Positions 14,501 through 64,000 of a stretch of 64,000 nt of DNA are shown here, piece after piece (position 1 is the stretch's first letter; each line of letters starts with the position of its first letter). The notes below the pieces were generated by a model. The model searched no databases. It was given only the letters and a program-made list of their open reading frames with translations, and had not been told where the DNA came from. Position numbers and translations under genes: made by a program. Location: positions 96,191,024 through 96,255,023 of the forward strand of contig NC_068988.1 in assembly GCF_001194135.2 (NCBI RefSeq), written 5' to 3'. Source of the DNA: Octopus bimaculoides. Taxonomy: Eukaryota.

Positions 14501-17500
14501 CAAACAAACGAACCTAAGTATTGGGTTTGATTTATTTGATTAAAAACCCTTCCAGGCAGTAATCCAAAAGATGATTAGGAAAACCAGGAATGTAATTATG
14601 ATAGGAAAAAGTCATATAAAATTGTTATTAGGTTAATATTTACCTTCTTAGATTCAAGTCTTAATTTTTGGAGTTTTGTTGCAACATCATATTGAATTTT
14701 GGAGTAGTTGTTTGTACGAACCCCTAATTCAGCCCCCAATTTTAGGAAATTGTCAAAAGAACCTATTGAAAGAGAAAAAAAAAACAAAAAAACAAAACAA
14801 AAAGAAGTTCAGAATAATTTTGTATTAAAAAAAAACCCCAAAAAAAACCCAGTTAGATTCACCTCAACATTTAAATTTGCCAAAATATTTTCGTCGCTTT
14901 GAGACCGCAACCTATTCACTGATAAGAAAACTTTTTTGTTAAAGTAAAACTATAAAAACAATATTTATTGTGGCTAAATCAGTAAAATATGATTAAATAT
15001 TGATATCTGGCTTCTTCACTTATCAGGAAACTAATTTCCTATCAATAAGCAATAACCAATTAGAATTAAATTTTCAACATATAGGCACAGGAGTGGCTGT
15101 GTGGTAAGTAGCTTGCTTACCAACCACATGGTTCCAGGTTCAGTCCCACTGTGTGGCACCTTGGGCATGTGTCTTCTACTATAGCCTTGGGCTGACCAAA
15201 GCCTTGCAAGTGGATTTGGTAAACGGCGGCGCTGGCATCGGCCATGTTCGGATGGTGCTTTTTACGTGCCACTGGCACGGGGATCACAACTACAATTTCC
15301 ATTTGATTTTGGTTTTGATGTACTTGACTCAATAGGTCTCCTCAAGCACAGCATGTCACCCTATGATCTAATGTACTTCTGAGTGGGCTGAGGCTGGTTA
15401 TGCGACACTGGTGTAGGTCACAGCTGTGGACTCACTTTATTTGCCGGGTCTTCTCAGTCACAGCATACCTCGAGAGGTCTCTGTCTTTCATCATTTCCTC
15501 TGTGAGGCCCAACGTTCGAAGGTCATGCTTCACTACCTCATCCCATGTCTTCCTAGGTCTCCCTCTACCCTGGATTCCTTCCACTGTTTGGGAGTGGCAC
15601 TTCNNNNNNNNNNCCTCATCCCATGTCTTCCTAGGTCTCCCTCTACCCTGGATTCCTTCCACTGTTTGGGAGTGGCACTTCTTCACACAGCTCTTCTCAT
15701 CCATCCATAGTACATGACCATACCAATGCAAAAAGCAACTATAATATAGAACACTACAAAATGAAAATGAAACAACAACAAAAAAAGATGTTAAGGGCCT
15801 TTTGCTTTTGATTCTGAAAGACTTCATAAAGATCAAAGCAATCCTATTGACTTTAATTTTAAAGATTAGTTTTCCTTACCAGGGTTGAAAATAAAATCTT
15901 TGTGAATTTTTTCTGGTTCCAATTTCTTCTCTTCTGGTTTCTTTAATGAGACTGAAGATTCCATTTGATCTTTATCCTATAATAATAAGGGTTCCTTTAT
16001 TATCCACAAAGGGGTTTACATTAAGGATAGCACAGGACAAAACACTGAGTGTGCATGCATGTGCGTATATGTGTGTGCGCATGTGTGTGTGTTGTGGGGA
16101 TTTTGTGTGTAAACAGGTTGAACAAAATAAAAAAAAAGTAGTAATAAAATTTTAACAATGAATATTCCTCAAAAGAGATTTGAGGGTTGCTCATGGAAAA
16201 ACCCTGGGTGCCCTGACTTCTGGGGAAGGTGTCATTTCTCAGTTCTTTATCTCTGGTTTTAATACTAATAATAATCCTTTCTATTATAGGCAGAATCAGC
16301 AGCCCACCAGATGAAATGTTTAGCAGCCAATTTAGCCCAAATTCTGATGGGGTTGGTTTTACTTTTTATCCTCTTAGGGTTAATGGAATAAGAACCAGTT
16401 GAGCATTGGAGTCGATGTAAGCAACTTATCCCTAAAATTTCTGGCCTTGTGCCAGAGTTTGAAACCATTATACAAGTGATGGAAGATCAGGAATTCTATA
16501 ATATCAGAATAACTGTCATGTCTGACGTTGCTCACTTCTAAATCCTTCTGTATTCAAAATTTAAATTCGAAGCAACATCAAATTTGCCTTTCACTTTGGA
16601 AGGATTAATAAAATAACCTAAAGATATTTACTGAGACTGATTATAACACCTTTTGCCTGCAATTAACCATTTACTTACACAATTGTCTCTTACAAATTAT
16701 TATCCAGGTACCAATAAAAGAATCATTACTTTTTCAACATTCCTCATATGCAAAATCTTTCTTTACCTCAACTTTTCTCTGTGTTTTTTCCAAACTTTTC
16801 GTTTCTTCTTCTTCCTCCTTTTTCTTTCTTCGAATGCTTCTATTTGCAAAAATAAAAAAAAAGCAAACCTTCAACATATCTTTAATACAGTTTCCCTATT
16901 CAGCAAACAGATTACGTAACAAGTTTAACTAAATGGAACACATCATCATCATTGTCGTCATCGTTTAACGTCTGCTTTCCATGCTGGCATGGGTTGGACG
17001 GTTTGACTGAGGACTGGCGAGCTAGGAGGCTGCACCAGGCTCCAATCTGATCTGGCAGTGTTTCTACAGCTGGATGCCCTTCCTAATGCCAACCACTCCG
17101 AGAGTGTAGTGGGTGCTTTTTATGTGCCACCGGCATAGGAGTCAATAAGGCAGGCCTGGCAACGATCACATTCGGATAGTGCTTTTTATGTGCCACTGGC
17201 ACAGGGAACCAGTCAGGCAGCACTGACATCAGCCACAACTACAATTTCCATGTTTCACTGCCGTGTAGCATGGCAGTACTCTCACACATGCATCACACAG
17301 TCCACCTTTCACTCTGAGTGAGAGGCCCTTTGTCACCAGGAGGGGATAGGAGCTTTCTGAACTTTGCCCAGGCTATTATTAACTTCATATGGAGAGGAAT
17401 CAGTTATGACCTTTTCCAGGGCCACAAGATGAGTGGGAAAAAGAGAAGAGGTTATTGTCAGAGTAAAGGCCTGGTATAAAAACTTGCAACAGAATAAACT

Positions 17501-18917: not shown

Positions 18918-21900
18918 AATGAATTTTTGTTGCAACAATTTTAGTTACATATTAGTTTTGTGTAACTAAATACACAACATTTGAAATAAAAGAAACATTT
19001 CTGAGGGTGAGATTGAGGGGGGAAGGGGGAGTGATGTGACTCTTAGTAAGCTGTGGATCATCAACTTACTAATTAAAGACACAAACAGAATGTTTTAAAT
19101 TAAATTGAAATGCAAACTAAAGAGCTCAGTAAATAAAAATCTAAAGTAAATGAATCCTCAGTTTTGAAGAGGAGCCCTCCGGTGGCTCAATCTACTGAGC
19201 CACCTACTCATTGTATTAATATGTGAGGTGACTGAGTACTACACAAACTCAAGGACCCTAAATGTGTACATTAATTTACCTAAACTAAATCTATTGTTGT
19301 TGTTGTTATTAATTTTCAGAAGTCTGGTGCAGGCTTCTGCCTGGCTGGCTCTTGTGAAACCGGTCCACCCATGCCAACATAGAAGGTGGATGTTAAATCA
19401 TGATGATAAGAAGAAGCTGATGGACTTAGTTCTGATTAAAAAAGTGATAATCATTGGTGATGGCCATGCTGAGACTCCATACTCTAGGCTCAGCTCCTGT
19501 CAATCCAACCAACCCATGCCAGCATTGAAAACAAGGTTATGATGAGATTTTCCAAGAATGTTATACAAATTTGACAGATATTACAAATGGAATACATTAA
19601 ATCAAAAATCATATTTGATTTTTACATACTTTTTACGGATTGAATGCATTTGTAGATTTTTGAAGGAGTTGAGGAGAGTAAGACAGTCTAGGATGTATTT
19701 CTTTAACAGCACCAACTGGAATGGTAGCCTTTTCTTTCTGATGTTATAGAATAATGAATTTCATTGCTTCAGATTAACCCATTTAGAGAACAATGCTGCT
19801 TTCAAAATTTAATGAATGCTTCTTAAAAATAAGAAACTAGGCAATATGTTTGTCTATGATGTGTACTCGTTAGCAATATGAATCTGAACAACTAGAAAAG
19901 AGGTGAAAGGGAGAAAATAAAGAGAACGACTTGCTTACATCGATCAGCTTTTGGATTTCCAGTTGGATAACATCCATCACATCCTGTTTTACATTTTGCT
20001 GGACTTCAGAAATGATACTTTCTTTGTTGAGTTCTTGTCTTTTAGATTTGGTTTGGTTACCTAAAGAAGAATGTGTTTCTGATAAAACACTATTTTTGGT
20101 ATTGCATACTGTTGATTGTGAAGTCTGAAGAGGTTTCTGGTTTGAAGAAACGTCTACATCATCCAAACTGTCTGCTGTAAATGATGATGTAACAGAGACA
20201 CTGAGGGGATCACTGTGGCTTCTGGAAAATAAAACGAAACTTCATTTAATAAAATGTTTCCAATTTTCAATCTGCTGTTCCTGAAGAGAAACTGCAGAAA
20301 CTGGTGAAAAATAAACAGAATATGATTTGATATTGAAGATATTAAGCACGTGAATAATAGAACGGTGAGCTTCAGAGTAATGAAATTAGTCTCAATAATG
20401 GAAAAGTAAAACTTCATTTTCATTTTCTACATTATTCTACACATGTGGCAAATAATAAACAAAATGGCTTTGCCTGTATGCTACACGACAGGGTTTGAAC
20501 TCTTAATCTTGCAATCAGTAGATTAGCAGAACCAGGAGTGCATCAGAAAAGAACTTATTGCAATGTAAGTTCAAATCTTTCTGAAAACAATTTTATCTTT
20601 TATTCTTTCTGAGACTGATAAACTAAGTACCACCCAAATATTGGAGTTGATTTAATCAAGTTTATCTGCGCCCCCTCCCCCACTCCCCACTTGCCAGAAC
20701 CTAATCTACTTCAGATAGTTGCTTAATTTACAACATTGGCTGTAGGACTTTGAAAGAATTGACTCACTCTTGGGGCTGTTGAATCTCAGAAACTGCTGAG
20801 ACATTGCTGAGTTCTGTGGCAAAACTCCTTTCATTGATACTGAAAAATATGCAAATAAAATTATATATAATAAAACAAAAGTTTGCACATCAGCACCATT
20901 TTATATGCAATCATAGAAAGGAAAATCTTGAATTAAATAGTTTTACATTAGTTTAGAATTGACTGAAAATATTTATATTGAAACCACCATCATTTCGTAG
21001 AACTTACAGTAAATTTCTTCAAGCAAAACCATCACGTAAAAACAAAACCAAATATTATGCTAAGATAATGAGGGCTAGTAAGAGGTAAAGGTGGGGAGCA
21101 GAATAGATTTCTGCTGGAGCACCGTTCAAGCATGGGTCGATGCCAGTGCCGCCTGACTGGCTCCCCATGTTGGAGGCACATAAAATACACCATCTGAACA
21201 TGGCCGATGCCAGTCCCCAACAACTGGCTCCTGTGCCGGTGACACATAAAAAGCACCATCCAAGCATGGTCGATGCCAGTGCCGCCTGACTGGCTCCCAN
21301 NNNNNNNNNNNNNNNNNNNNNNNNNNNNNNNNNNNNNNNNNNNNNNNNNNNNNNNNNNNNNNNNNNNNNNNNNNNNNNNNNNNNNNNNNNNNNNNNNNNN
21401 NGGGTCGATGCCAGTGCCGCCTGACTGGCTCCCCATGTTGGAGGCACATAAAATACACCATCTGAACATGGCCGATGCCAGTCCCCAACAACTGGCTCCT
21501 GTGCCGGTGACACATAAAAAGCACCATCCAAGCATGGTCGATGCCAGTGCCGCCTGACTGGCTCCCATGCAGGTGGCACATAAAAAGCACCGACTACACT
21601 CTCAGAGTGGTTGGCATTAGGAAGGGCATCCAGTCGTAGAGACCTAGCTAAATCAGATTGGAGCCTGGTGCAGCCTCCTGGCTTGCCAGTCCCCAGTCAA
21701 ACCGTCCAACCCATGCCAGAATGGAAAACGGATGCTAAACAATGATGATGATGAATGGGACAATGATTAAATTTTCAGGTATTAAACATGAGTAGTTTAC
21801 TCAGTGGTTATGAGTCAGTCAACCAGTGTATACCCTGGTTCAAATCCAAGTGGAATAAGCTGGTGGCATCACAATTAGGGGAATAACTAAAAGGAAATCA

Positions 21901-32016: not shown

Positions 32017-32498
32017 GTNNNNNNNNNNNNNNNNNNNNNNNNNNNNNNNNNNNNNNNNNNNNNNNNNNNNNNNNNNNNNNNNNNNNNNNNNNNNNNNNNN
32101 NNNNNNNNNNNNNNNNNNNNNNNNNNNNNNNNNNNNNNNNNNNNNNNNNNNNNNNNNNNNNNNNNNNNNNNNNNNNNNNNNNNNNNNNNNNNNNNNNNNN
32201 NNNNNNNNNNNNNNNNNNNNNNNNNNNNNNNNNNNNNNNNNNNNNNNNNNNNNNNNNNNNNNNNNNNNNNNNNNNNNNNNNNNNNNNNNNNNNNNNNNNN
32301 NNNNNNNNNNNNNNNNNNNNNNNNNNNNNNNNNNNNNNNNNNNNNNNNNNNNNNNNNNNNNNNNNNNNNNNNNNNNNNNNNNNNNNNNNNNNNNNNNNNN
32401 NNNNNNNNNNNNNNNNNNNNNNNNNNNNNNNNNNNNNNNNNNNNATTCTGGTGCCTAAACATAAGTACCATATTCAATTTTTGAATCTAAATCTAAAC

Positions 32499-35011: not shown

Positions 35012-38000
35012 ATCATCATCGTCGTTTAACGTCCGCTTTCCATGCTAGCATGGGTTGGACGATTTGACTGGGGACTGGTGGACCAGGAGTATATATATAT
35101 ATTTATGTGTGTGTCAGTGTTTCTCTACACCATCGCTTGACAACCAATGCTGGTGTGTTTACATCCCTGTCACTTAGTGGTTCAGCAAGAGAGACCGATA
35201 GAATAAGTACTAGGCTTACAATGTATAAGTCCTGGGGGTCGATTTGTTTGACTAAAGGCGGTGCTCCAGCATGGCCTGCAGTCAGATGACTAAAACAAGT
35301 AAAAGAACAAAAGGATCAAAGAACTTACTCTTGTAAAGAACTATTTTGGATTGTTTGCTCAACATTGGGTTTCTTTTTAGGAACTTTCTTTCTTGAATTC
35401 AAAGTCTTTAAGCTATTTCTTGATGGTTCATACCAACTATTATCTTCTGATTCTGTGTTTATTTCCAGAAAAGGATCTTCCCTTCCCCTGGCTTTTGATG
35501 GTGGATATTTTGAAGACCAGGTGTAAGTCTTGCTAAGAATTTGGTTAGTAAAGTTGAGTAAAGCTTCACATCCCAGAAGTGTTTTAATAGCAGGATCAGA
35601 TTTGGAAAGGTTCTTGTTATTAAGTATAAGTTTAACGACTTTATGAACAAAACAAATGATGACATTGAGATGTCGTTGATATAAGAAATCAAAATGAAGA
35701 AGATGTAAAAATTCTCTAAACATTCGAATCAAATGAAAAAGAGATGATTTATCTGACATTTCATTCTTTAAAGACTTGGTTAATGATGACACCTCAAGAA
35801 AAAGCTGGAACACCTTGGAGGTATTCAGTAAGGTTGCTTTGGTAATTTTTGCTCTTGTGGGATCCCAGATACAACCTGATGTCACCTCAAGTTTCCAAGC
35901 TAAGAGCAGACTGAGATAAATATTTTTCAAAATTTCCGAGTGGGTTTTAGAAGTTTTTGGCTGTAATTTGCAGTTGTTGGTTAAAGGAACACCAAATGTA
36001 ATGACTCCAGCATCTAAATTCCTAAGATGATCCTCTTGAACAATGCTTTGGTCACTATCTTCTGAATGTGTTCCATCTTCAAAGTGATAGGATCTGGGAG
36101 GTTGCAATAAAGCAAGGCTGCTAATGTTTTCCTTGAGAAAAATTCCATCAGCCGAGTTCTGTTCTGAATGGGTAAAATCAAGTTTGTATTCTTTACTTAG
36201 TATAGAAAGCTTCTGAGAGGACCAAGAGACGAGGTTTTGAACCAGAGACAAACAGTCCAAATTGTAAGGCAGTTCAAGAACAGTCACAAGAAAGCCATCA
36301 CTACAAATAATAATTGGTAAATGTGGATGAGTGCTTATTGAGAACTTTTGAGGAGTGAGAATCTCATTTCGTTGATTTGCCCCGACTTTTGATATATTTT
36401 CATCTCTGTGAAAGAATAAAAAAAACAAAAAAACAATCTTATCAATGACTGAGAAACAAAAATTACAAAATCATTAAATAAAATATTTTTGATATTTTTA
36501 CTTCAATAAAATAAAAGTTTATTTATCAATGTATAAAGTAATGTGATAAAAGTATTTAAAAAATACAATAAATAGAATCTAAGCAATTCATTATCTTTGT
36601 GATGATATCAGTTTTAGGTGAATACAACAATATTTCACCTGAAAAATGTGAAATGTCTTTTAAATCAAAGAAATTTTAAGGATCAGAACTTAGCTTCCTT
36701 GTCATGGTGTTAAATGGATGAGAAAAATTATCTCACAGAAAGGACATTGGTCAGTCACAAGTAGTAACATTCCCAGATCTGATATTATTGGCAACAAGGT
36801 GAACTCAGGTGCATAGAATTAAGTGTTCGTAAAGAAGCTGGAATAACTGCAAAACTTTTGAGCTGGAACTCAAATAGCTGACCAGTCTTTCCTGTTAAAA
36901 CAATTTGTGGCTGATGTTGACTGGCACCTGTGCTGGTGGCATGTAAAAAGCACCATTCAAGTGTAGCCAATGCCAGTGCCACCTGGGTGGCACTGGCATT
37001 GGTCATCATTTGAGTGTGGCCAATACCAGTGCCACCTGACTGGCTCCCATGTTGGTGGCACATAAAAAGCACCCACTACACTCCCAGAGTGGTTGTAGAA
37101 ACCTTCTCAGATCAGATTGGAGCCTGGTGCAGCCTCCTGGCTTGCCAGCCCTCAGTCAAACCATCCAACCCATGACAGCATGGAAAGCGGGCGTTAAACG
37201 ATGACTGCAGAAAGGTGAATTGAAAAAAAAAAACTTGGTGGTCATCAGTTGTGTTTGTCAATGTGCACAATAGGAGATGAATGAAATTAGNNNNNNNNNN
37301 NNNNNNNNNNNNNNNNNNNNNNNNNNNNNNNNNNNNNNNNNATAGAAGCAAAACAAACAAAAAAATATTTGGAGATGACAAAGTCAGACGTGAGAATGGT
37401 TCCATGATGATAGATGTTGAATAGTCCTAAGTAACAAATGGACAAACAGATTTGAAGAAGATGAAAATTATTAATGTGATCACCATCATCATCATCATGC
37501 TCTCCCCAACCTCACCCCCCAATGATGGCTAGGATGATGATGGATTGGAAAGACGGGGCTGTATTTTTTAAAATTTTATTTCATTTGCCAAGCTCTGCTA
37601 GTTTTATTCAGTTGACAGGAAGAGGTTTGTAAGGATTCTTGTGGTAATCTGAACAAAAAAAAAAAAAAGATTGCATTAATTACCTTACAATAATAACCGG
37701 ATGAATTGGTAGGAAGAAGGCTGGTCCCATTTCTTGGGACAATCCATTGGTCTTCAAAAGTACAGGTTCACCAAGACGAGGAAGAATACAAACAGAGCCA
37801 GAGTTGAGTATACAGACGACAAACAAGTTATTGTACGTCCATTTCATAGAAGCGATCCAGTAATAACTGTCAAAACAAAAAAAGATAAAAATAACAACAA
37901 CAATAACAATAATGGTTTCAAATTTTGCCACAAGGGCAGCAATTTTGGGGGAAGGGAGAAGTTACTGAGCAGTGATCCCTTATGTATCAATAGACCCCTG

Positions 38001-50132: not shown

Positions 50133-53100
50133 TTATGCATCTGCAATTGTAACTTCAACTTCAACACCAGGTTCAATGCTGATAGATGTCTGAAAGATCT
50201 TGTTAAGGAAAACCATTACATGCAGAAAATAACAGCCAAAACTCTTCTGATGACAGTAAACCTNNNNNNNNNNNNNNNNNNNNNNNNNNNNNNNNNNNNN
50301 NNNNNNNNNNNNNNNNNNNNNNNNNNNNNNNNNNNNNNNNNNNNNNNNNNNNNNNNNNNNNNNNNNNNNNNNNNNNNNNNNNNNNNNNNNNNNNNNNNNN
50401 NNNNNNNNNNNNNNNNNNNNNNNNNNNNNNNNNNNNNNNNNNNNNNNNNNNNNNNNNNNNNNNNNNNNNNNNNNNNNNNNNNNNNNNNNNNNNNNNNNNN
50501 NNNNNNNNNNNNNATCAATATTAATTAACTGACCAAAGCCTTTTGAGTGGATTTGGTAGACCTGACAGAATAAGTAGCTGCATTTAACAAAAATTAAGTG
50601 CAAGGGTCAATCATTCAACTAAAAACTTCAAAGCAGTGTCCCAGCCTAACGAGTGAAACAAAAGATGTCACAAAATGATTCTGAGAGATGTGAAAGCTAA
50701 AAGCAATTCTATCAAGCCTTTTCATGAGCAAAAGTGACAAGCATACTGGGATTGAAGCATTCACACATACAAGGAGAATGAGAATCGTCAGTAACTGAGA
50801 GGCAGGCGTGTATCGTATTGTACAAGAAAGGAATAGGCACACCCAGAGTTACACTTAACATCACAAATATGAAAGATGGCCACACAGTGTCAAGCCGAGC
50901 ACAACTGTCACCTTATGATCGAATTCCACATGGTTCTATGCTTGATAAAACATTACAAGGGTTGGAGGGAGAAAGAAAAATTGATACTTTATTTACTACT
51001 ACATACATCAAGGCCAATACAATCTACTAAAACCAATGACCCACTATGTCAGAAACAATCAATAAAATTGTGCTGCCATCAACTGAAGTAAGTTGTAAAA
51101 ACAACCACTGCTTAGTGACAGCAAATTTATATTTGCACCGTATACCACTAAATACTACTAAGTTATTAGTACATAGCCGGCTTAGTTAGTGCAGTGATGA
51201 TTATTGAGTAGTTTCTGTGCAAACACTTGTCCCCCATCCCCTTTACCCTGTATGAATAGTAATTTGACGTATATACAACAACCCAACAATAACTGGCATT
51301 CTTTTGTTTTGACTCAAAAAATCATAACACAGAACTTGGTAATTTCTGTGAGCACGTGTCATCTTGTCAACTGTTAGTTGACGTATTGAAATGGAAAGAG
51401 AAAGCTAACAGGTGCTTGTTTCTGTGTGTGTGCATTCATGTTTATTCCTGTATGTTTGTGTGAGTGCGCCCCTTCAAGTTTAAAAATGCGACATTGTTAG
51501 CGTAATTTCATTACATCTACATTCCATAACACACACATACAACCCATTAGCTTTCTCTTTTCCACTTCCATACGTCAATTGAAAGTCGACAAGACGACAC
51601 GTGCTCACGGAAATTACTGAATTTTGTGTTATGATCTTTCAAGTCAAAACGGAAGAATGCCCAATCATTGAAACCGTTTCACCCCACCAAACACTGTTTA
51701 TAAAACAAAAATACAAAAGGATACAATCTGTTTTACTATCTCTGATGGACTGTGCAGATCAATAATTCTTTTGTGAATTCTCATCTGGTACCTGTCCCAT
51801 GTTTTGGATCCTTCTCCACAGGGGGTCTTTCTTGTAGTGATACGGAGAATCTTGGTAGGCATACGAACAGGACCTTTAACTTTTAGTTCTTTCTCTTTGG
51901 CTCCTCTGATCAGATCAGCACACACTAAGTTGAAAGAAAAGGCATTTAAAAATATTAACCACCAGCCAACATATTTGATCCAACAAACCAGAATTATGCA
52001 CATACATCCTCGTTAAACAATTAAACATCAAAAAAAGAAATCACCTTCAGGCCATGTTCACTTTGCATTGTTGTAATGAAAGTACAATATATTCCATTAG
52101 GCATAACACCACCCAAAAACGAAAAACCTCCAAAACCAGTTTGAGAGGAACTTGATATACAAAAATACTCACCCTTTTCTAAGCTCTTTACATTCCTACT
52201 CGTCAAGGTGATGCGAATTCTGTGAACTGGAACATCTTCAACTGGAGCCTTACCAGTATCTTTAGCGCAATGAGCCTGAATTGAAAAGTTTCCATCAATT
52301 GAATATTCAGAGTGAGAGAACAAAAACACTAACAATTTCTACGGTGAATTCAGAGGGTTTCAACAAGTAACAGTTTTAGTATTCGTTCAGCTGAAGTCCA
52401 GTGTTTATTGAACAGTCCTCTGATCAAAGATACTCCACACACAAATGCCATTCAACCCAATGTATTAAGACGGCAATGACAAGTTATACCAAGAGGCTTC
52501 ATTGTCTCAAATGTAAACTGCTCACAAGAGCCAAAGCATGCCATAAATGTTAGCAGTGGACAAACAGGTAAATACAGACACACATCACTAATCCATGAAG
52601 GTGATCAGCAGAGCAGACAGAATATTTATTCAGTGCGACAACCAAGCGTTTGATATTTTAAAACTCCAATCGTCTACCGTAATTTTATCAAAAAATTTTT
52701 TTCTGAACTAAAACTCATGAATTTTTTTAATCAATCGGAACATACGGCAGCGCTGTATTTCATTTGAAATAGGGTAAAAAAAAATAATGTAATGCTGACA
52801 GCTAATTGCAAATTGTGAAAACAACCACTGTTTAGTGACAGCAAGTTTATATTTGCACCGTATACCACTAAATACTAAATTATTAGTACATAGCCGGCTT
52901 AGTTAGTGCAGTGACAACAACAGGTTTTGTAGGCAGATTACGTACAATACAAACAATGAGGAAACGAAGCACAGCATTTCCAGATTTTCAGAAAATACAA
53001 TATCCAAGTAAAGCATTCGTATATAAAATAAACCAGGTCGAGATCCCAAAATTATCCTCCAGTTTCTTGACCTACATCAATAATTATGATCAATGAAGCA

Positions 53101-53977
53101 CTCTTCCGGTAGTAATCAGTTACGGAAATTGGTAACAACAAAGTCGGAGAGAACTCGCGCCAATTATTTTTCGTAGAATTTATAAGCACAAATTGTAATC
53201 AACCCCCCCCCATTTTAGAAATGAATCCCTGGAAAACTCTGTAGGAAACATTTTTCAGGCAGTTGTGAAGAACAATTGAGTGGAAGCATCAACCTAATCA
53301 CGTCCCATGATGTCGGGAAATCTTTTAAAGGGTGACATATACTATTTAATGGATACTGGAGCAGCTGGAAGTCATAGAAAAACGACTGACCCTAATTAAA
53401 TCAGAACCTATAGATGGACAAAAAGCTTCCCATAATACATAACACATAATTAACCACATGTTGACAGAGCAAGCTAGATTGATTTGGCGATCTGGATTTC
53501 ATCGATCTCGTGTCCTAGATCCGATTAGGGCTTACCAGAGCTATACAACAAAGAAAAATAACTTCTAATATAGACAATTGAGAAATTTACTAGATTATAA
53601 TGAAAAGAGATAATTATATTTCGACAATCGTAATAATTTCCCCGGACAGAATGAAAAACGTGTACGTAAGAACTCCCACCCCGACCACAACTAAATAAGT
53701 TATTGCTGTGGAGTCAACATCGGGATATTTGCTAAAACAGATCATAAAGGTTAAAACGATATGAAGAATGCGGGAAGCGATGAATTTAATCCATTTAAAA
53801 AGAACCAAAAATCCGATGAACTTAAATAATAATTCGTAAAGACCGCATGGATTATGAAACATGGCGCCCACATGCTGTAAATTAATTGAGGACTTTTTAA
53901 ACAGAAATTACTAATTAAATATAACAATTGTAAACAAAATAGAAATTATAATTATAAATTTAAATTCTACATACCAT
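50133..53977 (-). CDS. RPS20: 40S ribosomal protein S20 (uS10), 120 aa; exons 53975-53977 (ATG), 52173-52275, 51725-51924, 50133-50189
   Basis: Spliced protein [60 protein letters not shown]...[27 protein letters not shown]; all junctions GT-AG and in phase; ATG|GTATGT first exon. Confidence 0.97.
51091..51197 (-). ncRNA. Box H/ACA snoRNA-like RNA, copy A (RPS20 intron 3)
   Basis: Near-identical to 52811-52914 while flanks are unrelated; long 5' hairpin, H box ATATAA, short 3' hairpin, ACA + 3 nt at the end of conservation; same strand as host. Confidence 0.65.
52811..52914 (-). ncRNA. Box H/ACA snoRNA-like RNA, copy B (RPS20 intron 1)
   Basis: Paralog of 51091-51197 with the same H box and terminal ACAATT. 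Confidence 0.65.
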
Positions 53978-54069
53978 TTTTAAAAATATTCTATGCTGGC
54001 CGACTTAATCAAAGACTTCCTAAGATCAGCGGTGAGCCAGAGAACGTCTTTGACGAGCGAAGCTCAGTT

Positions 54070-54082
54070 GGGAAAGAAAGAA
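54070..54082 (-). promoter_or_regulatory. RPS20: 5' terminal oligopyrimidine (TOP) tract / likely TSS of RPS20
   Basis: Minus-strand TTCTTTCTTTCCC about 100 nt upstream of the ATG, as is typical of ribosomal protein mRNAs. Confidence 0.75.
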
Positions 54083-54459
54083 TAATAGCTGCGCAGTTAC
54101 TAAAATCCGTACCAAAAATGGGGGTGAAAGGCTGTCAAATTTATTTCTTAGCTTTCAAATATTATAAAATGCATAGATATCGTTTATAACATGATAATTA
54201 AAATAGTTTTGAAGAAATTTAAATTTCATTCGCTCTTTCTGTATCAAATTTGAAGTATTTATAATATATTTTATTTAACTCTGCACCCTCATGGACGAGT
54301 CCATTATGTATCCGTTTTGACGTTATATTAAAAAATATTAAATACCCTCAAAAGGATCTAAACTCAAAGGTTTAAACACAGAATAAAAAAATAGACGACG
54401 ATGATGAAATTAAATAAATTTTAAAGGACAAAATGAATTTTCTTCCCAAATACCGGTTG

Positions 54460-54467
54460 TGACGTCA
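54460..54467. promoter_or_regulatory. CRE/ATF palindrome in the RPS20 / divergent-gene promoter
   Basis: Exact TGACGTCA about 22 nt before the AAGATGGC (YY1-like) motif. Confidence 0.5.
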
Positions 54468-54489
54468 TATGTACCACGTTATAGTCAAG

Positions 54490-54501
54490 ATGGCAACCAA
54501 G
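54490..54501 (+). CDS. Probable first coding micro-exon (MATK) of an unidentified divergent gene
   Basis: CAAGATGGC start context followed by AAG|GTAGGA donor; CRE TGACGTCA at 54460-54467; possible 26-nt exon at 55206-55231. Confidence 0.4.
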
Positions 54502-55789
54502 GTAGGAAAAGTCTTGGTCAATATTTCCTATAAATACGTTTACGTTTATTTTGGTTCCTCTATTTCTCCGCTTGCTCGATCATGTTTCTAACTCATATAC
54601 GCTATCTTTTAATTATTTTGACTGACATGCTTGTCTTTTAACTTTGACCTAAGGCTGACAGTTAAACGAAAATCAACAAGAACCAGGCTCCACAAATGTT
54701 TGTAATTCTTTCTCTCCCCCAACTTTTTATTTATGTCCTAATTTTTACCTCTCACTTTTTATTCCTGTTTTCAATTTTCCATTTGTTTCATGTTTCTCGT
54801 TGAATCTTCTCAAATTAGCAAGCAGATATACGTTTATACATCCACACATGCACCTTGGAGTCTAATATATTAATGTGCAAAACATTTTAATAATATTCAA
54901 AGTGTTTTATTTTGACAGTTTGCTGAACCATTTTGGGGTTTGATCTTTTTGGGTGGGGACCCACTTCAATGTATTTGTATGTTATCACGGCCAAAGTCCA
55001 CAAAAACTTAAGGTTCAGGATTTTGCTTGTCTTATGTGAATACCTGTACATTATTTAGATGTTCACTGTTTAAAGTGAAGTATTTAACTTCAAGTAAATA
55101 GAAAAATAAGTAAAAATACAGGAATTTATTAGAAAACTACATTTTATCTATTTTTTTTGTTAGTTTACCTTTAGGTGGTTCGTGTTGTTTTTTTTTCCTT
55201 TACAGATATTATCATTTTATAGACGTTTCAGGTAAAAAAAAAAAATACCTTCTACATAATCATCTGATTTGCTAAATGTTGAAGTGAAGTTTTTACTTTA
55301 AGTTGCCAACAACTTCGCTTTATTAAAGAAAAATTAAAAAAGTCGAAATGACGTCCGACACGTCTTTTAATTAATTTCTTTCTTTTCAAGTTGTGATGTG
55401 GCAGTTTTGTTATATGAATCAATTATAAACAATTTAAGTATTAAGTCAAAGGAGATTGTTTTAAGCTTTCTCCACTGACGTTCGCAATTCCAACTCCTAT
55501 GTTCCAAATATTTTCCTCTGACTCGATTTGACTATCTCTTATTTTTTTTTATTCGTCTCTGTAAGAACGCATTACGCAGCAGACAAGCAACAAAAAAACT
55601 TATATACGCTACAGTTCATTTCAAATTGATGGATGTTTTGGCTTCCTCGTCGAAGGCTCAAATCGAACTTTAAAGGCGTTGTTCCTCATAGGACAATATC
55701 ACTTTTAGACAGAAGAGGCCGCCGGTGCTCTTCTAGATAGACCCGTTCGGATACGTTCCGACCGACCTCAGTAATCGGAGCAGACGACG

Positions 55790-55815
55790 ACTACTACTAC
55801 TACTACTACTACTAC
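55790..55815 (+). repeat. (CTA)n trinucleotide repeat
   Basis: Direct reading; sits between a CpG-rich segment and an AATAAA-ended segment on the opposite strand. Confidence 0.9.
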
Positions 55816-57639
55816 ATTGTTTCAGTTTTATTTACCACCCAGGCTCATTCATTCTTGAATCAAAACGTCCAGAGTGTTACAAAATACATGGGGATACACA
55901 AAAGACGGTTATAGAAAAACGAGGAGCAGTAACGACATTATACAATACAAATTGGTGGCATGTTAAAAAAATTAAGCAAAAAGTCTCCGAAGAAATGACA
56001 CTAGTTAAATGATTGTACATAAACAGAAAAGAGACGGAACTTAGGAGAAATGCATTCCCTCCTGGGTGGGATCAAGGTTTTCCACATCATTGAGCATCTC
56101 CCTTTTGCATTTCTTCTGGGTACTGACTACTATTTTTCATGAAAATACCCGTGTTGGAATAGGCAAGAAAGGGCCCACGTCTCTTGTGATTTTTGTAGCC
56201 CACAAACGATATTTTTTATGAGCAGCTTATCTTCAGGTTTCCTATCTTCCATATCTGTGCGTTTTCTTTCCCTAAATGTTCCTGTGTTAAGTCCTTCATC
56301 AGTTCTTCATTTGCTGTACAAAGAACTGTCTTCATTTATTATACAAAGCCCCGTGAAAATCCTTGGACATTTTGCCAGTCTTTCCCATAAGTTCCCTTAC
56401 TTTGGTGGGGAGGGGCGGATTACTTTTTCCCTTTGTCTTTTTACGGTCTGTGGAAGTTTGCACCACCGGTTCCTAGTCCGTCTTGTTACAAGATGATGGA
56501 GTAATGCGACTGGAAGCAGAGCCCTTGGCTTCTTTATTACCTTCTGTGATTCAGGGCAAGATGAATTTTTTTGGCTCCTGCTGGAACTGTGATCAGTGGT
56601 GCCCTGGAAGTAGGTTCTGGGGCCTGCTCTTCTTGTTGGCTCTATGGCTGTCCACTGCTTTCTGTCTCACTTTTGGCTTTTGCTGCTCCAGAATAGCACT
56701 GTTCTCTTTGGTGGAATGGGCATTGTTATGAATTGTATGTCCATTCAGGCCTGTCCTGACCCTATATTTTTAGTCGTCCTGGTACTCACAACCACATAAG
56801 GGTAGTGCTGAGTCTGAAATCACCAATGCCCTGAAATAGAACCCTTGTGTTCTGCTGGCCCATATTTAGGGACGCAAGTTTGAAGGAAGGTGTGTGGTGC
56901 ACCAACTCTGCCTGTTACTTGCGTTGTCATGAGAGGGAAAGTTTCAAAGGCAGAGGGAGAGAGAAATAAAGGAATATTACTATTTATAGAGACATCGTTC
57001 AGTAATGACAAAAGGGTTATTGTTAACTGTAGAAGGACAGTCATTTTCTGAGATTTTATTTTTAACTTTGCTGAATAATATTATTTCAGTTCAATTATAA
57101 AACTGTATTTACATTACAGTTTAATTAATCACAATCACAAGTAGATTAATTGTTGACAAAGGTATGTGATTTCATTTAGATTTACACATACAGAGGATTA
57201 ATTCATTCTTTTTAGACATTTCCATGACTAACCATAATAGTTCAGCCACCACTGACCAATGCCTTCGTTGGAAATTGCAGTACTTTTGTATTTCATGGTC
57301 TGTCCCTGTGACTTATCTCCTGATGAGGTTCAATACAATGGAGCTACAAGTGTTATCATACTCTGCCTGTAGTTAATAAATGTAACGAATGCCCACCTTA
57401 GTTCATCAACTCCAGACAAATGTTCTTCTTCTGGTACCAAAATAGAAGTGTTTGAGTCGGCTGAGTTGGCAGTATCAAGAGAATGGTTTGTAGTATTTGT
57501 TACAGCATTCAAATATCATTATGGTCGACTTTGTCTTTATTTTTTATGGTCAACAAATAAAGAACCAACTTGCCCTTTTCTGTGGTAGATTCTTGTCTAT
57601 CTGCCTGCCTGCCTGCTTCTCTCTCTCTCTCAATGTAGC

Positions 57640-58250
57640 TGTGTAAAGAAGTGCCAATCTCTAACTGTGGAGGGAACCTGTGGTAGTGGTAGACCCAGGA
57701 AGACATGGGATGAGGTGGTGAAGCATGACCTTTGAACTTTGGGCCTCATGGTAGCAATGACTAGTGACAGACCTTTGGCGATATGCCGTGCTTGAGAAGC
57801 CAAGTTAAACTGTAGTTATGGCTGATGCTGGGGTCCTATAGCTGGCACCCATGCCAGTGGCTCGTAAAAAGCACCTTTTGAGTGTTGGGTGTCACGGGGG
57901 CAAGGTGGCTGATGCTGGTGGCATATAAAAAGCATTCTTTGAGTGTTGGGCCTCACAGAAGCAATGGCTAATGACCGAGATCTTTGGCATTTTACCTTGT
58001 TTGAGAAGACCCATGAAGCCAAGTGAAATTGTAGTCATGGCAGATGCTGGTGTCATGTAAATGGCAGCTGTGTTGGTAGCCCGTAAAAACACCCATTACA
58101 CTCTGTGGAGTGGTTGGCGTTAGGAAGGGCATCCAGCCATAGAAAACCATGCCAAATCAGACTAGAATCTTGTACAGCTTGCCGGCCCTGGTCAAACTGT
58201 CCACCCCATACCAGTATGGCCAACCGACTTTAAATGATGATGATGATGAT
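57640..58250 (+). mobile_element. RTE LINE 3' end including structured 3'UTR and (GAT)n tail
   Basis: GRPRKTWDEVVKHDL followed by GGCAC/GTAAAAAGCACC modules, GGTTGGCGTTAGGAAGGGCATCCAGCC and GATGATGAT; links the SINE-like tails to the RTE parent. Confidence 0.85.
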
Positions 58251-59193
58251 ATGTGCGTGTGTATATATATTGATTTGACTTAGACATTAGGTTTCATCTG
58301 TTTATGGTTTGATGACATAGTTGAATGAATTGCCTTATGAAATCAATATTATCAATAAATTTCAGTGTAGAGAATACAAAAATGTACCAGAACCAATAGG
58401 TATTTCTAATAGTCTCTTTATTGATTAACACTATCAAGCACCTTGCATCTGCTGTTTTCAATGACCTCCCATGTCTTCCATCATTACCCATTTATTTTAG
58501 TTTCTTATGTATCCCTATATCTCCTTCTTCATGGATTCTACACTTTGCACATCATTCTATGGCTTTCTCTTTTATTTTTCCTTTCTGATCCACTCCTATA
58601 TCTCCCACCTGACCCTTCTCCATGCTGGTTATTTCCCATCATCTGCACTCCCACCCTTCTTCATTAACCGCTACATTAACCTCTAACTCCCCCTGTTTAC
58701 TCCTCCCCACTCTTATGAAAACACTCCCTCCCTCCCATGTTCCACCATCCGTGTCTTCTCTCATGCTCACCTTCTTGTTCCTGGAGAGTTTACTTCCTTC
58801 TTCTTGTCTCCTTCAGCCATATATCTTTATTGCAAGATATATGCATTGGTCTTTCTCTCTCATACTTTTGCCTTTCAACACATGGCATACAGCCACCACC
58901 CTCCACCTTCTCCCAAATACTTCCTCTTAGTATTTGGGAGCTTTCTCCTTTTCCTCTGTTCTTTTCTGTGTTGCAAGTTACATGGCAACCTCTTTAGTGC
59001 TGGTGACACACTTTGTGCAGTGGTTGGCACACACATTCACATAACCCTTTCCTACTGTTTAAGGGTTAAATCAACAACTTGATGATGGCAAAAAGTCCTG
59101 CTTCAAGAGGTACTTTGAGAAATTGAAAATAAACTTACTCTTCCACGAAAAAGAAAATTCCAAATAGTTTTCGCTTCCTCACTGGCAGATATA

Positions 59194-60318
59194 CACTGAA
59201 CTGCAAAAGAAATGCAATTTTTTCAAATGTCATTTTTATATGGTTAATTCTCAAAATTTATTTTGGAGATGTATATGTAAACATTCCAAGATATGCTGGT
59301 TTATGGCTGAGACCCCAATTGCACGTAACCTTTCAAGTTTCCCTGAAATGAGACACCAACACGCAGCTGCGTTGAATGTCGTGGGTGGCAGTCACAAACA
59401 GTTGTCATGAAAACTGAAATGCATGTGCATCTCGTGGAGGTTATAGGTATAAAATCAACTTGAACCGCATTCCTGGCATTTGTAATTTGGACACATCAGG
59501 TATGACCCGATTGTCAGCAGCACAGAGAGAATAAGGTATAGGCCGATTGCAAGCAGAGCACACTGCCCTGGTTGTTGTGAAAGCTTACAATGTCCATGTC
59601 AGCACCATTTATTTCCTGCAACAGCAATACAACAACACCAACAGCACTGGAGACCATGCCCGCAGAGGGCACCCCCTGGTGACCACGTCCAGGCAGGACC
59701 ACTTCATCCAAATGCAACACCTCCGTTATTGCTCCAGACTGGCCAGCGTGACAGCTTGCAGGCTCATTGGCACTGGACAGTGACCCATCAGCGACCCATG
59801 TGTTGCCAGTGTCCTGCTCGAGGACCTGTCTTCACCCTCTGCCACCGTCAGGCACGACTACAGTGGGCTACACAGCACTGACATTGCCGGCTGCAACAAT
59901 GGAGGTCGATGGTCTTCTCTGATGAGCATCAGTACTCTGTTTCCATCTTGGATGGTAGTGAGAATGTGGCGTAGGAGGGGTGAATTCTAGAGACGCATGT
60001 GACTAAAGTTTGGTTGGAAGATTTTAATTAAAAACTTTTGAAAACAAGAAATTTGTACTCGGAGCCAGAGCCAGTTCCAGCCAGGTTGGTAACGAAAGGG
60101 TTTTGAATTGTGGAAGCTGAGTGGATGGACTGTGTCTGTGACTTGCAGGCCCTTGCCACATAGTTTCGCACTTATCATGGGTGGATTATGTTAAAGAATA
60201 CAAGAGTCTGGAATATCAGTGACATTATAGTTCAATGAGTTGCCAGTTCTGTAGATTGAGCAACTGGATTCTCTTCACCAAATCCAACATGGGATTCATT
60301 TACTTTTATTATTCTGTG
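59194..60318 (+). mobile_element. Degenerate Tc1-like DNA transposon (internally deleted, with nested MITE fragment at ~59990-60105)
   Basis: TA + CACTGAAC left TIR; transposase N-terminus TRLSAAQRE*GIGRLQA..NVHVSTIY..TTSRQDHFI and RLQWA..QWRSMVFSDE with stops and frameshifts; degenerate right TIR. Confidence 0.85.
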
Positions 60319-61210
60319 TGTGTGTGTGTGTGGCACATGTATCAGTGGAATATACTTAAGGTGTACTTGGTGTGTTCCCCTAAAAAAAAAAAATCATGAA
60401 ATAAACCATTTATGGAATTTTTATAAGTCTTCTGTTTGCAACTTGTTACTGTATCATTTCATGTTCACTTTTTATGATGGCATGTATTGGATAGGCCATC
60501 CTGGTTCAAGGCAGTTCTTAACTGCTCTCTCTGAGAGACATTGAAAATAAGTACCCTCCTAGAGGATCAGGGGGCCACATCTTGCTTGTGTATTCCATTT
60601 TGGTATAGTTTCTATGGCTGGATACTCTTCCTAACACTAACCATATCAAATTGTGTTCTGAGTGTGTTTTACTGCAATACCAGGGTCATTCTCGTGGTAA
60701 GATCAAGTTCTTTTCCATCCTGTATTATCTCTGATTGTCAATCTCTACATTTCAATTGCCCTGGTATTATCTGAGTTAAGCTGTAATCACCAGATAATCT
60801 GCACAACTTTTACTGAAAATTGAAGTGTGTGACATTGCAAATAGTGAGGAGGGAAGCATGAAGTTAGAAGTGGAAACTTATAACCGACAACTGCTTGCTG
60901 AGTCTTGAATTCATTTATAATACTCAAGTCACAACCAGCTAATTAACAGAGACCGTTAAGATGGTTAGTAGCTTGGCATCATAAAGACAATATTTGTGGT
61001 TGATTGTTAAGAAAGAAATGAGGAAGATTAGTCTTGAACTGTTTTTGAGTTTTTTGTCTGACTATTCATAATCTGCAGTATTTATCAATGAGCGATTAAA
61101 GCTTGAGTGATTAAAGCTTGTTGAGTTTTGAAGACAGACGAAAATGTGTAACATGATGTTTGTTTTTCCTCAAGTGTAATAATGCTATATTTGAAGTTAC
61201 CAAAGTAATA

Positions 61211-62095
61211 TGAGGTCTGATCAATTAGTATCCGGACTGTTGCTATAGTAACGAAGCTAAAGCACGCAGATTGAAGCCACTTGGCACAGGTTGACCATGA
61301 CCTATGCTGTGCATGTGCACTAAGTTTTAACATTCTAGCTCACTTCTGCTGTTTACAGCAGTGCTTGGAAGGAACATGTGTAACGTGTGATCATCGCATT
61401 GACCACAACAAAGTTATCATAGCGATACCTGCTCAAAGGCCTATGCAAAGTTGCAGGAAGCGTATGGCGAGGAGTGTATGGGCTGCACACAAGTGTATGA
61501 TTGGTTCAGATGTTTCCAAGATGGCCAAAAAAATGTCAATAGTGATGAACGTTCTGGGAGACTCGCAACCAGCAGAACTGAGATAAACATTGCAGATGTG
61601 TGGGCAGCTGTGAGGGGAAATCATCGAATCACTATCTGTGAGTTATCAGAAGATGTGCCGATTAGTTACGGTTCATTTCAGTCCATTAACACAGAAGATT
61701 TGGGCATGTGACGTGTGTCTGCCAAGTTTGTGCCAAAACTGCTTTCAGCTGACCAAAAAGACAGGTTTCAGTTGCACAAAATTTCCTTGATTGTGTTGAG
61801 AATGATGAAAACTTTTTGAAAATTTTGTGTAGATCTCTGAGCAGGTATCACCAAGCTTTTGGCAACATTTGATGCAGATTTTCTGCTCAACTTTCTGTCA
61901 TGGTCAATGCAATGAACACACGCTACATACCTTCCTTCCAAGTACTGCTGTAAACAGTGGAAGTGAGCTAGAACATTAAATCATAGTGCGCATGTACAGC
62001 AGAGTTCAAGGTCAATCTGTGCCATGCAGCTTCACTCTGCTTGCTTTAGCTTCTTTACTATGGCAGCAGTCTGGATACTTATTGATCAGACCTCG
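61211..62095 (+). mobile_element. Internally deleted mariner element with ~80-bp TIRs
   Basis: TIRs (T/C)GAGGTCTGATCAA.AGTATCC.GACTG.. at both ends; HTH peptide QEAYGEECMGCTQVYDWFRCF..DERSGR..RITICELSE; VSAKFVPKLL; no DD34D region seen. Confidence 0.9.
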
Positions 62096-62903
62096 TGTAT
62101 AGAGCTGGGAATTGAAGCTGGATTGTAAGGTTTAGCTCAGCATTTTACTTTTATGGTTTTATATATCTTTGCATTTCCAAAAGAGTAGAGTACAGCTGAA
62201 GCTTCAATTTGTGGCGATAGAGAGTTTCTTGTTTTGATTATTTTTATTGTGCATTTGTGAAGGTGAAGAACAAGCTCTGGAAAACTTTAAGATAAAAGAC
62301 TGCAAAATTAGCTTAAATTTATATCAGCATCGCTGTGTTTAACAAGCTTGCTTTTCAACCATTTTGTCTTGGGTTCAGTCCCACTGCATGGCACCTTGGG
62401 CAGGTGACTTCTACTGTAGATTTGAGCCAACCAAATATATATATATTCTTTCAGTTTCTGTCTATTAAATCCATTCACAAGGCTTTGGTCAACCTGAGTC
62501 TATAGTAGAAGACACTTGCCCAAGGTGTCACGCAGTGGGACTGAACCCGGAACCATGTGATTAGGAAGCAAGCATCTTACCACACTGCCACGCCTATTGT
62601 ATATTTATGATTTGTCTGTTTTGTTGTGTCCATCCTTCCCATGGTTCTCCATAGATGTTGGAACCAGCATTGTAAGCTCTCAACCAAGATTCATACTTCT
62701 TACAGATATAATGTAGTGTGCTGGCTCTTCACTAATTCCTTTAAGATGTATCACAGTGTTGATTTAACCTGTTTTGTTATCTCTGAAATCAATGTGGGTC
62801 ATTATGCTTTGATAGTTATGTTGGTTTGGTTCACAGAAAAGTCAGATTGTTTCCTTTGTTTGCTGTATTTGTAGCAGTAGAATAAATATTAGTTATGTGG
62901 GCA

Positions 62904-62944
<41 letters not shown>

Positions 62945-63057
62945 TTGTGTGTATGCGTGTAATCTTTTACTTTGTGTGTTCACTCTTATAAATATTTTTC
63001 TTGATGATTGTAACTAATACAGAAAAATGCTCATGTGTGTGTGTCTGTGCATACATG

Positions 63058-63079
63058 GATCTATCTATCTATCTATCTA

Positions 63080-63168
<89 letters not shown>
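63058..63168. repeat. Compound (TCTA)n-(TA)n microsatellite
   Basis: Direct reading. Confidence 0.95.
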
Positions 63169-64000
63169 GTTTTTATTTATAGTTGTTGAAGAGAAATTTG
63201 AACCAACCGAAAAGAATAAATCTTGAAGAAAAATTCAAATTAAGTTAATAATAAAAATAATTGTAACCTTCACTGAGGTTTCGTTTATACAATCAATAAG
63301 CTGACATCTGTTACTTTGCATATATTTTCCTCTGACATTCAGCTATAGCATATTGACAAAAAAAAATGTGTGTGTGTGTTTGTGGAGAGATGAAACTTTT
63401 TTTTCTTGTCTGTGTAGATATGGAGATTTGAGGCAGAGGCATGAATATCTAACTTGATCAAGGTTTTCAAGTTTGTAATTTAATAAATCTTGACCAACTA
63501 ATCCTCAGCAACTCCGTCTTCTTGGATAAACAGCTGGCATTTTATTGGTTGTGATGACGAATGTTCTAGCTGATTTGATCACTGCTCGTGAAATTAGCAT
63601 AGTACTCCACAAACACACATCTACCCTTAATGTAGTTCTCAGGGAGATTCAGCTTAATACAGAATGTAACAAGGCTGGCCCCTTTAAAAACCAAGTGTAA
63701 CTTTTGCCAGCTGAGTGGAGTAATGTGAAATAAAGTGTCTTGCTCAAGGAATCAATGTGCTGCCTAAAATTGAACTCACAACCTTACAATTGTGAACCAA
63801 GTACTCTAACCACTAAACTATGTCCCTTCACAACAAATAAAATACAAGATTAAAACAACCCACATAGTTCCGGGTTCAGTCCTACTGCGTGGCACCTTGG
63901 GCAAGTGTCTTCTATAGCCTCGGGGTGACCAAAGCCTTGTGAGTGGATTTGGTAGATGGAAACTAAAAGAAGCCCGTTGTATATATATGTGTGTGTGTAT

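Follow-up and report, generated by a model that had tools for sequence, protein, structure and literature searches.

Vertebrate box H/ACA small nucleolar RNAs (snoRNAs) of the SNORA70 family lie in introns of RPL10. Jorjani et al. (2016; PMC4914119, Table 2) list their conservation as 'Vertebrates' and assign, by prediction, the 'SNORA70A/B/E/11/14 5' stem' as the guide for position 1232 of 18S ribosomal RNA (rRNA). RPS20, another ribosomal protein gene, hosts SNORD54 (snoU54) in vertebrates, a snoRNA of the C/D class that acts in 2'-O-methylation. Here we compare with these systems a 64,000-nucleotide (nt) stretch of the Octopus bimaculoides genome (NCBI RefSeq assembly GCF_001194135.2, contig NC_068988.1, positions 96,191,024 to 96,255,023; hereafter the window), in which RPS20 (uS10) carries two near-identical copies of an intronic element, copy A and copy B. 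With a probability of about 0.8, we conclude from the sequence that each copy is a canonical box H/ACA snoRNA of ~130 nt, encoded in sense within an RPS20 intron, and that its two hairpins would guide modification of the equivalent of 18S U1232 and of one uridine in 18S helix 44. A preliminary description of the window had taken the pair for unusually short H/ACA-like RNAs, possibly directed at 18S U651, the SNORA20 site. The assignment to the H/ACA class is supported by the two hairpins, the H box and the ACA box described below; the short length and the U651 target are not.

Anatomy of the repeated RPS20 element

Copies A and B are direct repeats with ~93-95% identity over ~105-108 nt and one 3-nt indel. 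The repeat scan resolved them into two segments, 51090-51157 against 52810-52877 (94% identity, 68 nt) and 51156-51197 against 52873-52914 (98% identity, 42 nt), and flank alignment found the surrounding sequences unrelated and unalignable. Both copies are on the minus strand, which is the sense strand of RPS20. A 28-mer of the element, searched with up to three mismatches, matches twice in the window against an expectation of zero, and BLASTN with the whole element found no third copy in these 64 kb. In viral contigs, neither the element nor an 18S 3' end was matched by exact-pattern scans. The repeat is genuine and is not locally dispersed, in agreement with the preliminary description of a near-identical pair with unrelated flanks.

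Homology between the copies continues past the point where near-identity stops. The RNA had been proposed to end just after ACAACT/ACAATT, leaving a vestigial second hairpin of ~30 nt. Beyond this boundary, ~60% identity is kept for a further ~30 nt, and this weaker homology runs ~25 nt on to a stem followed by an ACA trinucleotide in both copies. Folds of the copies cut at ~105 nt gave z-scores of -1.8 and -2.0, with only small, unconvincing hairpins in the 3' part. When copy A was extended to 51063, its minimum free energy fold took the form hairpin-hinge-hairpin-tail (z = -3.34, with 0 of 200 shuffles as good), as did that of copy B extended to 52777 (z = -3.08). The second hairpin in these folds is ~62 nt long and is closed in copy A by a lower stem of 7-8 bp, (U)GCUGUCA / UGGCAGC(A), of which 7/8 pairs are kept between the copies despite divergence of the adjoining pocket strand. 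The ACA box lies 0-2 nt past this stem in both copies, a 3' end placement predicted from sequence, and the ACA(AC) once taken for the end of the RNA is base-paired within the 3' arm of the hairpin 2 upper stem. Since the homology beyond the earlier boundary closes a conserved lower stem and reaches a downstream ACA, the RNA is predicted to measure ~130 nt, a normal size for its class, and the apparent exception of a shortened RNA vanishes because the 3' boundary is now correctly placed.

Hairpin 1 folds as it had been described, with a UGCAC/GUGCA lower stem, an internal loop and an upper stem, and is followed by the H box AUAUAA. A covariance model built from copy A scored copy A at 174 bits and copy B at 120 bits (E ~1.6e-23), with all 132 positions aligned. 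Of the 30 modelled pairs, 29 are standard in copy B, which has one non-standard pair, and 29-30 are standard across both copies. At relaxed thresholds, four Rfam models aligned globally to copy A over ~51202-51066: DdR18 (24.7 bits), SNORA70 (19 bits), snoR135 (17.6 bits) and ceN45 (17.4 bits). DdR18, snoR135 and ceN45 set the ACA box on ACAAUU at 51071-51066; the weak SNORA70 alignment extends only to 51071, 5 nt less far but still past the earlier boundary. All four scores are far below the gathering scores and therefore support the architecture, not membership of a family. Counted on the sequence, the distance from pocket top to box is 14 nt for hairpin 1 (H box) and 16 nt for hairpin 2 of copy A (ACA box).

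The element thus shares with eukaryotic box H/ACA snoRNAs in general the hairpin-hinge-hairpin-tail layout, an H box of the form ANANNA, an ACA after hairpin 2, two-sided pockets, a spacing of 14-16 nt, a length of ~130 nt and a location in an intron of a ribosomal protein gene of the terminal oligopyrimidine (TOP) type. No structural difference from them was found, the hairpin 2 upper stem being short (8 bp, one bulge, 4-nt loop). We conclude that each copy is, as predicted, a two-hairpin H/ACA guide RNA of ordinary size. A C/D-box reading was also considered and rejected, as inspection by eye found no RUGAUGA and CUGA boxes in the right order on either strand; Rfam scans detected no snoU54 match in the window. 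Coordinates of all features are given in Table 1.

Table 1. Features of the two predicted snoRNA copies and of their host gene, numbered from the first letter of the window
Feature	Position	Strand	Sequence and basis
Copy A, predicted full-length H/ACA snoRNA, 132 nt, RPS20 intron 3	51066-51197	-	Fold and covariance model alignments
Copy B, predicted full-length H/ACA snoRNA, 130 nt, RPS20 intron 1	52785-52914	-	Alignment to copy-A model
Hairpin 1 5' pocket strand	Copy A 51178-51188; copy B 52895-52905	-	UAACUAAGCCG, identical in both copies; 18S pairing
Hairpin 1 3' pocket strand	Copy A 51139-51146; copy B 52859-52866	-	GGUAUACG, identical in both copies; contains UAUACG
H box	Copy A 51127-51132; copy B 52847-52852	-	AUAUAA; fits ANANNA, in hinge between hairpins
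Hairpin 2 lower-stem 5' arm	Copy A 51122-51116	-	GCUGUCA; pairs with UGGCAGC
Hairpin 2 5' pocket strand	Copy A 51115-51109	-	CUAAGCA in copy A; CUAAACA in copy B
Hairpin 2 lower-stem 5' arm and 5' pocket strand	Copy A 51109-51122; copy B 52842-52829	-	
Hairpin 2 upper stem	Copy A 51088-51108; copy B 52808-52828	-	GUGGUUGU-UUUU-ACAAC(U)UAC; fold and covariance model
Hairpin 2 3' pocket strand	Copy A 51079-51087; copy B 52801-52807	-	UUCAGUUGA in copy A; AAUUAGC in copy B, diverged
Hairpin 2 lower-stem 3' arm	Copy A 51078-51072; copy B 52800-52794	-	UGGCAGC in copy A; UGUCAGC in copy B
ACA box	Copy A 51071-51069; copy B 52790-52788	-	
RPS20/uS10 host gene	50133-54080	-	Open reading frame and translation reading, upstream sequence, coordinate mapping
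RPS20 exon 1	54080-53975	-	TOP-like CTTTCTTTCCC start; end at ATG/GTATGT
RPS20 exon 2	52275-52173	-	
RPS20 exon 3	51924-51725	-	
RPS20 exon 4, coding part	50189-50133	-	

Differences between the copies were drawn from a gap-aware pairwise alignment and from the copy-A covariance model, and all fall into four classes: those in loops or the hinge, those that preserve a pair, those compatible with the same target, and those in the hairpin 2 3' pocket strand. Hairpin 1 has, in its apical region, the 3-nt indel and a C to U change, with an apical stem of 6-7 bp kept in both versions; the hinge and the hairpin 2 apical loop differ by U to C each. The 3' arm of the upper stem of hairpin 2 has two substitutions, C to U (G:C becomes G.U) and A to G (U:A becomes U.G), both of which keep the pairing. 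A G to A change in the hairpin 2 5' guide strand of copy B replaces G.U by A-U with the same target. The hairpin 2 3' pocket strand is shortened as well as diverged in copy B, one U.G pair of the lower stem becomes a U.U mismatch, and 2-3 extra nt stand ahead of the ACA box. Such differences are what a structured RNA would show, though as evidence this is weak, coming from two sequences only. The first ~105 nt are near-identical between the copies, whereas the last ~25 nt are far more diverged; gene conversion with a boundary in hairpin 2, or relaxed or altered selection on the 3' guide arm of copy B, would be possible explanations. The heptamer ACUAAGC is common to the 5' pocket strands of the two hairpins (hairpin 1, 51178-51188; hairpin 2, 51109-51117), perhaps by hairpin duplication or by chance.

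If the copies are expressed, each snoRNA would be freed from the spliced intron by exonucleolytic trimming, as intronic H/ACA snoRNAs are, and assembly of dyskerin, Nop10, Nhp2 and Gar1 on the RNA would precede this trimming. The internal loop of each hairpin would then base-pair with the rRNA that flanks a uridine on both sides and place that uridine for isomerisation.

Predicted 18S targets of the two hairpins

Target sites were scanned for in 120 metagenome contigs containing ribosomal DNA (rDNA), which were picked by the universal 18S 3' end pattern and then oriented. Our own pairing scan left the target U and the nucleotide after it unpaired, with the 5' pocket strand matched to the sequence downstream of them and the 3' strand to the sequence upstream. 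Significance was assessed with shuffled guides scored per rDNA unit in eight rDNA loci, and arm strengths are given as duplex energies. The 18S sequences that hold the predicted sites are CCGAUUGAAUGGUUUAGUGA and GGAGCCUGCGGCUUAAUU.

Hairpin 2 of copy A matches a site in the 5' strand of 18S helix 44, CUACCGAUUGAA[U]GGUUUAGUGAG (core CCGAUUGAA[U]GGUUUAGUGA), by contiguous pairing on both sides. UUCAGUUG forms 8 bp (six Watson-Crick and two G.U) with CGAUUGAA directly 5' of the target U, and UCACUAAGC forms 9 bp with GUUUAGUGA downstream of it. This site is the best copy A match in the four rDNA units with CCGAUUGAAUGGUUUAGUGA, where 0, 0, 1 and 0 of 300 shuffled guides equalled it. The arm energies are -11.7 kcal/mol (5') and -7.1 kcal/mol (3'). 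In 34/34 rDNA units with both motifs, the target lies 33 nt 3' of the uridine in CCCUU[U]GUACAC, the one bracketed by the SNORA70 3' hairpin (GUGUA / AAGGG; U1692 site); we take it to be about U1725 in human numbering. Judged by its two-sided complementarity, hairpin 2 most likely guides this helix 44 uridine.

The same site would be addressed unequally by copy B, in which the strong 5' arm appears kept and the 3' arm degraded. With its G to A change the 5' arm is fully Watson-Crick for the same 18S segment (-11.7 kcal/mol), and the 3' arm has an energy of +0.3 kcal/mol. According to De Zoysa et al. (2018; PMC6049503), pseudouridylation needs a minimum of 8 bp, and a pocket can accommodate additional unpaired nucleotides of the substrate, in which case the unpaired U nearest the 5' end is the one modified; an arrangement of 9+4 bp in copy B is plausible because of this tolerance and this minimum. 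The rDNA scan found no conserved site that beats helix 44 as a separate target for the diverged hairpin 2 pocket of copy B. A search of the literature for a guide to this helix 44 uridine in Drosophila, for which 'Psi18S-1854' is a tentative lead, found none.

Hairpin 1 is identical in the pocket strands of both copies and most likely guides the equivalent of 18S U1232. Its 5' strand forms seven contiguous Watson-Crick pairs with 18S CGGCUUA, directly 3' of the U-G in GGAGCC[U]GCGGCUUAAUU, and two more past one mismatch. GGU of its 3' strand pairs with the GCC located 5' of the site, so that 14 nt separate the target from the H box. The commonest hairpin 1 match, GGAGCC[U]GCGGCUUAAUUUGAC, occurred in 34 rDNA loci, and the U1232-type site was the best match in 6/8 rDNA loci tested, with energies of -9.8 kcal/mol for the 5' arm and -4.0 kcal/mol for the 3' arm. 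By the H/ACA pairing rule, this uridine is the one addressed by the SNORA70 5' strand AAUUAAGCCG.

Comparison with SNORA70 and with RPS20 loci of other animals

SNORA70 was the sole sub-threshold Rfam H/ACA match with the hairpin 1 guide sequence. The hairpin 1 5' strand AACUAAGCCG occupies the same position as the SNORA70 consensus strand and differs from it by one U-to-C change, with CUGCA... in the lower stem, a 5' pocket AA(U/C)UAAGCCG adjoining the upper stem, and, ahead of the H box, ...UGCAAA in both. Genuine SNORA70 is present as two copies in different introns of RPL10 of the bichir Erpetoichthys (97 and 108 bits; locus L125, 2341-2476 and 5820-5954), so that both systems have two copies in separate introns of one ribosomal protein gene. 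The bichir frame CUGCAG..AUUAAGCCG..UGCAAA matches that of hairpin 1, and the 5' hairpins, CUGCAGCUUAUUAAGCCGACC...GGUGUGCAAAGGCUGCAGACA in bichir and CUGCACUAACUAAGCCGGCU...GGUAUACGGUGCAAAUAUAA in the window, share one frame. They also share the predicted U1232 target (PMC4914119, Table 2) and an interaction in which the 5' strand dominates. The two RNAs differ in their 3' hairpins, which are unrelated: SNORA70 has GUGUAUG / CU.UAAGGG (U1692), whereas the window RNA has CUAAGCA / UUCAGUUGA (site 33 nt downstream), and the 3' hairpin of the SNORA70 model does not align to the window RNA (local gap of 50 against 40 nt). The score against the SNORA70 model (RF00156) is 19 bits compared with a gathering score of 40, at E = 0.99 in a search of 2.2 kb and 0.068 in a search of 151 nt. 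Because it fails the gathering score, and because host gene (RPS20 against RPL10) and second guide differ, the window RNA is not a demonstrated member of SNORA70. We suggest that it acts in the manner of the SNORA70 5' hairpin, whether through homology or through convergence on one target.

SNORA70 was absent from the mollusc RPL10 loci searched (Haliotis, Magallana), and the bat RPL10 locus (L124) gave no SNORA70 at E<=0.1 or at the gathering threshold. RPS20 introns of Mytilus galloprovincialis contain two SNORA53-like H/ACA copies that score above gathering (79-80 bits; L128, 7850-8044 and 13455-13649). These resemble the octopus pair in being two H/ACA copies in molluscan RPS20 introns and differ in family and guides, with no sequence similarity. 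Multi-copy H/ACA snoRNAs in RPS20 are therefore not unusual, and the family varies by lineage. A hairpin in Patella intron 1, preceded by AAUAAGCCGG (L002, ~3769), was set aside as having no recognisable H/ACA layout.

The translated RPS20 of the window is 86-93% identical to metazoan uS10 proteins. The mapped exon coordinates place copy B in intron 1 and copy A in intron 3, and thereby bear out the host gene, strand and introns given in the preliminary description. Intron 3 also contains an inverted repeat between exon 3 and copy A (51295-51397 / 51559-51661), with 103-nt arms that are 83% complementary and 161 nt apart. It resembles a miniature inverted-repeat transposable element (MITE) or foldback element, and plant-miRNA models matched it only weakly. 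There are five runs of N (assembly gaps) in the window, at 15604-15613, 21300-21401, 32019-32444, 37291-37341 and 50264-50513, the last inside RPS20 intron 3. An open reading frame (ORF) on the plus strand at 61451-61711 (...SDERSGRLATSRTEINIADVWAAVRGNHRITICELSEDVPISYGSFQSINTEDLGM) looks by eye like the N-terminal helix-turn-helix of mariner-type transposases. In Lottia, Patella, Mytilus and amphioxus (L001, L002, L128, L130), RPS20 and an EMP70/TM9SF gene stand head-to-head; no long ORF suggestive of EMP70/TM9SF was seen at 54100-64000 of the window.

Alternative explanations and implications

Several points weigh against a canonical snoRNA pair with these two targets. Two near-identical copies make for thin structural evidence, and no Rfam family passes its gathering threshold anywhere in the window. 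BLASTN, motif scans and covariance model searches found no orthologue in the RPS20 introns of Lottia, Patella, Mya, Mytilus, Physella and amphioxus or in the Haliotis and Magallana RPL10 loci, and there is consequently no cross-species covariation. The rDNA scanned came from unidentified eukaryotes in metagenomes and not from the host's own 18S. At the U1232-type site, the 3' arm of hairpin 1 has only 3 bp, and the match is equalled somewhere in the rDNA unit by 7-26% of shuffled guides, so that it is not significant alone. The SNORA70 likeness and the U1232 prediction are not independent, since both rest on the same 7-10 nt. The 3' arm of copy B keeps only 4(+2) bp at helix 44 and barely pairs, and the helix 44 site itself varies among eukaryotes (GAAUGGC, GAAUGAU, GAACAUU and others). 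We know of no mapped pseudouridine at this uridine in human or yeast.

The model of a ~105-nt H/ACA-like RNA with a vestigial second hairpin and a single pocket for U651, beside the SNORD54 target, accounts for the sharp fall in near-identity past ACAAC/ACAAU. It also accounts for UAUACG, which, as had been pointed out, is fully complementary to 18S CGUAUA just 5' of U651. SNORD54 of vertebrate RPS20 does have the same hexamer in its guide: the host had been named correctly, as an RPS20 intron of Geospiza contains a snoU54 match of 56.5 bits, whose antisense element UAUACGCUAUU (L131, 2814-2877) shares UAUACG with the hairpin 1 3' strand, in the same host gene and for the same 18S loop. Pockets, moreover, accept more than two unpaired substrate nucleotides, and a total of 8 bp can suffice (PMC6049503). 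The complementarity stands; the target is not supported. With the six pairs CGUAUA:UAUACG, 12 nt would separate U651 from the H box, whereas 14-16 nt is canonical, and the 5' strand adds only 5 bp past a gap of 3-4 unpaired nt on each side. The energies (5' arm -2.8, 3' arm -4.1 kcal/mol) are about half those of the U1232-type site, and the relaxed Rfam search of the element found no SNORA20 match even at E<=10. The hexamer complementarity next to U651 is all that the element has in common with SNORA20. The truncated folds, the paired state of the supposed terminal ACA and the conserved stem beyond it, with GCUGUCA and then ACA in both copies, likewise argue for the longer RNA. We regard the U651 model as improbable, and the U1232-type and helix 44 predictions as better supported. 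The shared UAUACG is probably a coincidence and at most reflects a secondary interaction, which pocket flexibility makes conceivable.

A two-hairpin H/ACA RNA of the same anatomy could instead act on other targets, such as 28S GAGC[U]GGGUUUAG for hairpin 1, a small nuclear RNA (snRNA) or a lineage-specific rRNA segment, or could be an orphan. The search covered metagenomic rDNA only, the shuffles leave the hairpin 1 match short of significance, and the hairpin 1 5' strand does pair over 7 bp with 28S GGGUUUAG in 17 rDNA loci. That 28S site has a 3' arm of only 2 bp, however, and the guide of hairpin 1 agrees with one already assigned to a pseudouridine mapped in human. Chance would hardly explain the hairpin 2 match, which has 17 bp on the two sides of the target in the right geometry and was reached by no more than 1 of 300 shuffles, and we consider other targets unlikely, if less so than the U651 model. 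Least probable of all is a non-functional intragenic duplication or transposon-derived fragment that folds by chance. The window is rich in repeats, including the MITE-like inverted repeat in the same intron and the mariner-like ORF at ~61.5 kb recognised by eye, and cross-species conservation offers no evidence to the contrary. Against this origin, the homology boundaries coincide with the predicted 5' and 3' ends of the snoRNA, and within unalignable flanks each copy keeps intact its H and ACA boxes and, in either hairpin, the lower stem and the 5' guide strand. The element is present only twice in 64 kb, both times in sense and in introns of one ribosomal protein gene, and its 18S complementarity is significant.

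We therefore favour a previously unrecognised pair of box H/ACA snoRNA genes of ordinary architecture, as predicted from sequence, whose helix 44 target may be lineage-specific. More tentatively, and with the odds somewhat against the full scenario, hairpin 2 would direct a lineage-specific pseudouridine to helix 44, the decoding-site helix. The SNORA70-type guide for pseudouridine 1232 would predate the protostome-deuterostome split and would have been recombined with a new second hairpin and a new host, and the 3' pocket of copy B would be decaying or retargeting.

The snoRNA pair challenges no rule of H/ACA architecture. If confirmed, it would be an unannotated H/ACA snoRNA gene pair missed by Rfam thresholds and would yield predictions of two pseudouridylation sites in the 18S of an animal lineage that is poorly charted. 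A guide listed as vertebrate-only (SNORA70 5' hairpin, 18S-1232) would be extended to a protostome, and the pair would serve as an example of guide hairpins and host genes being reshuffled in evolution.

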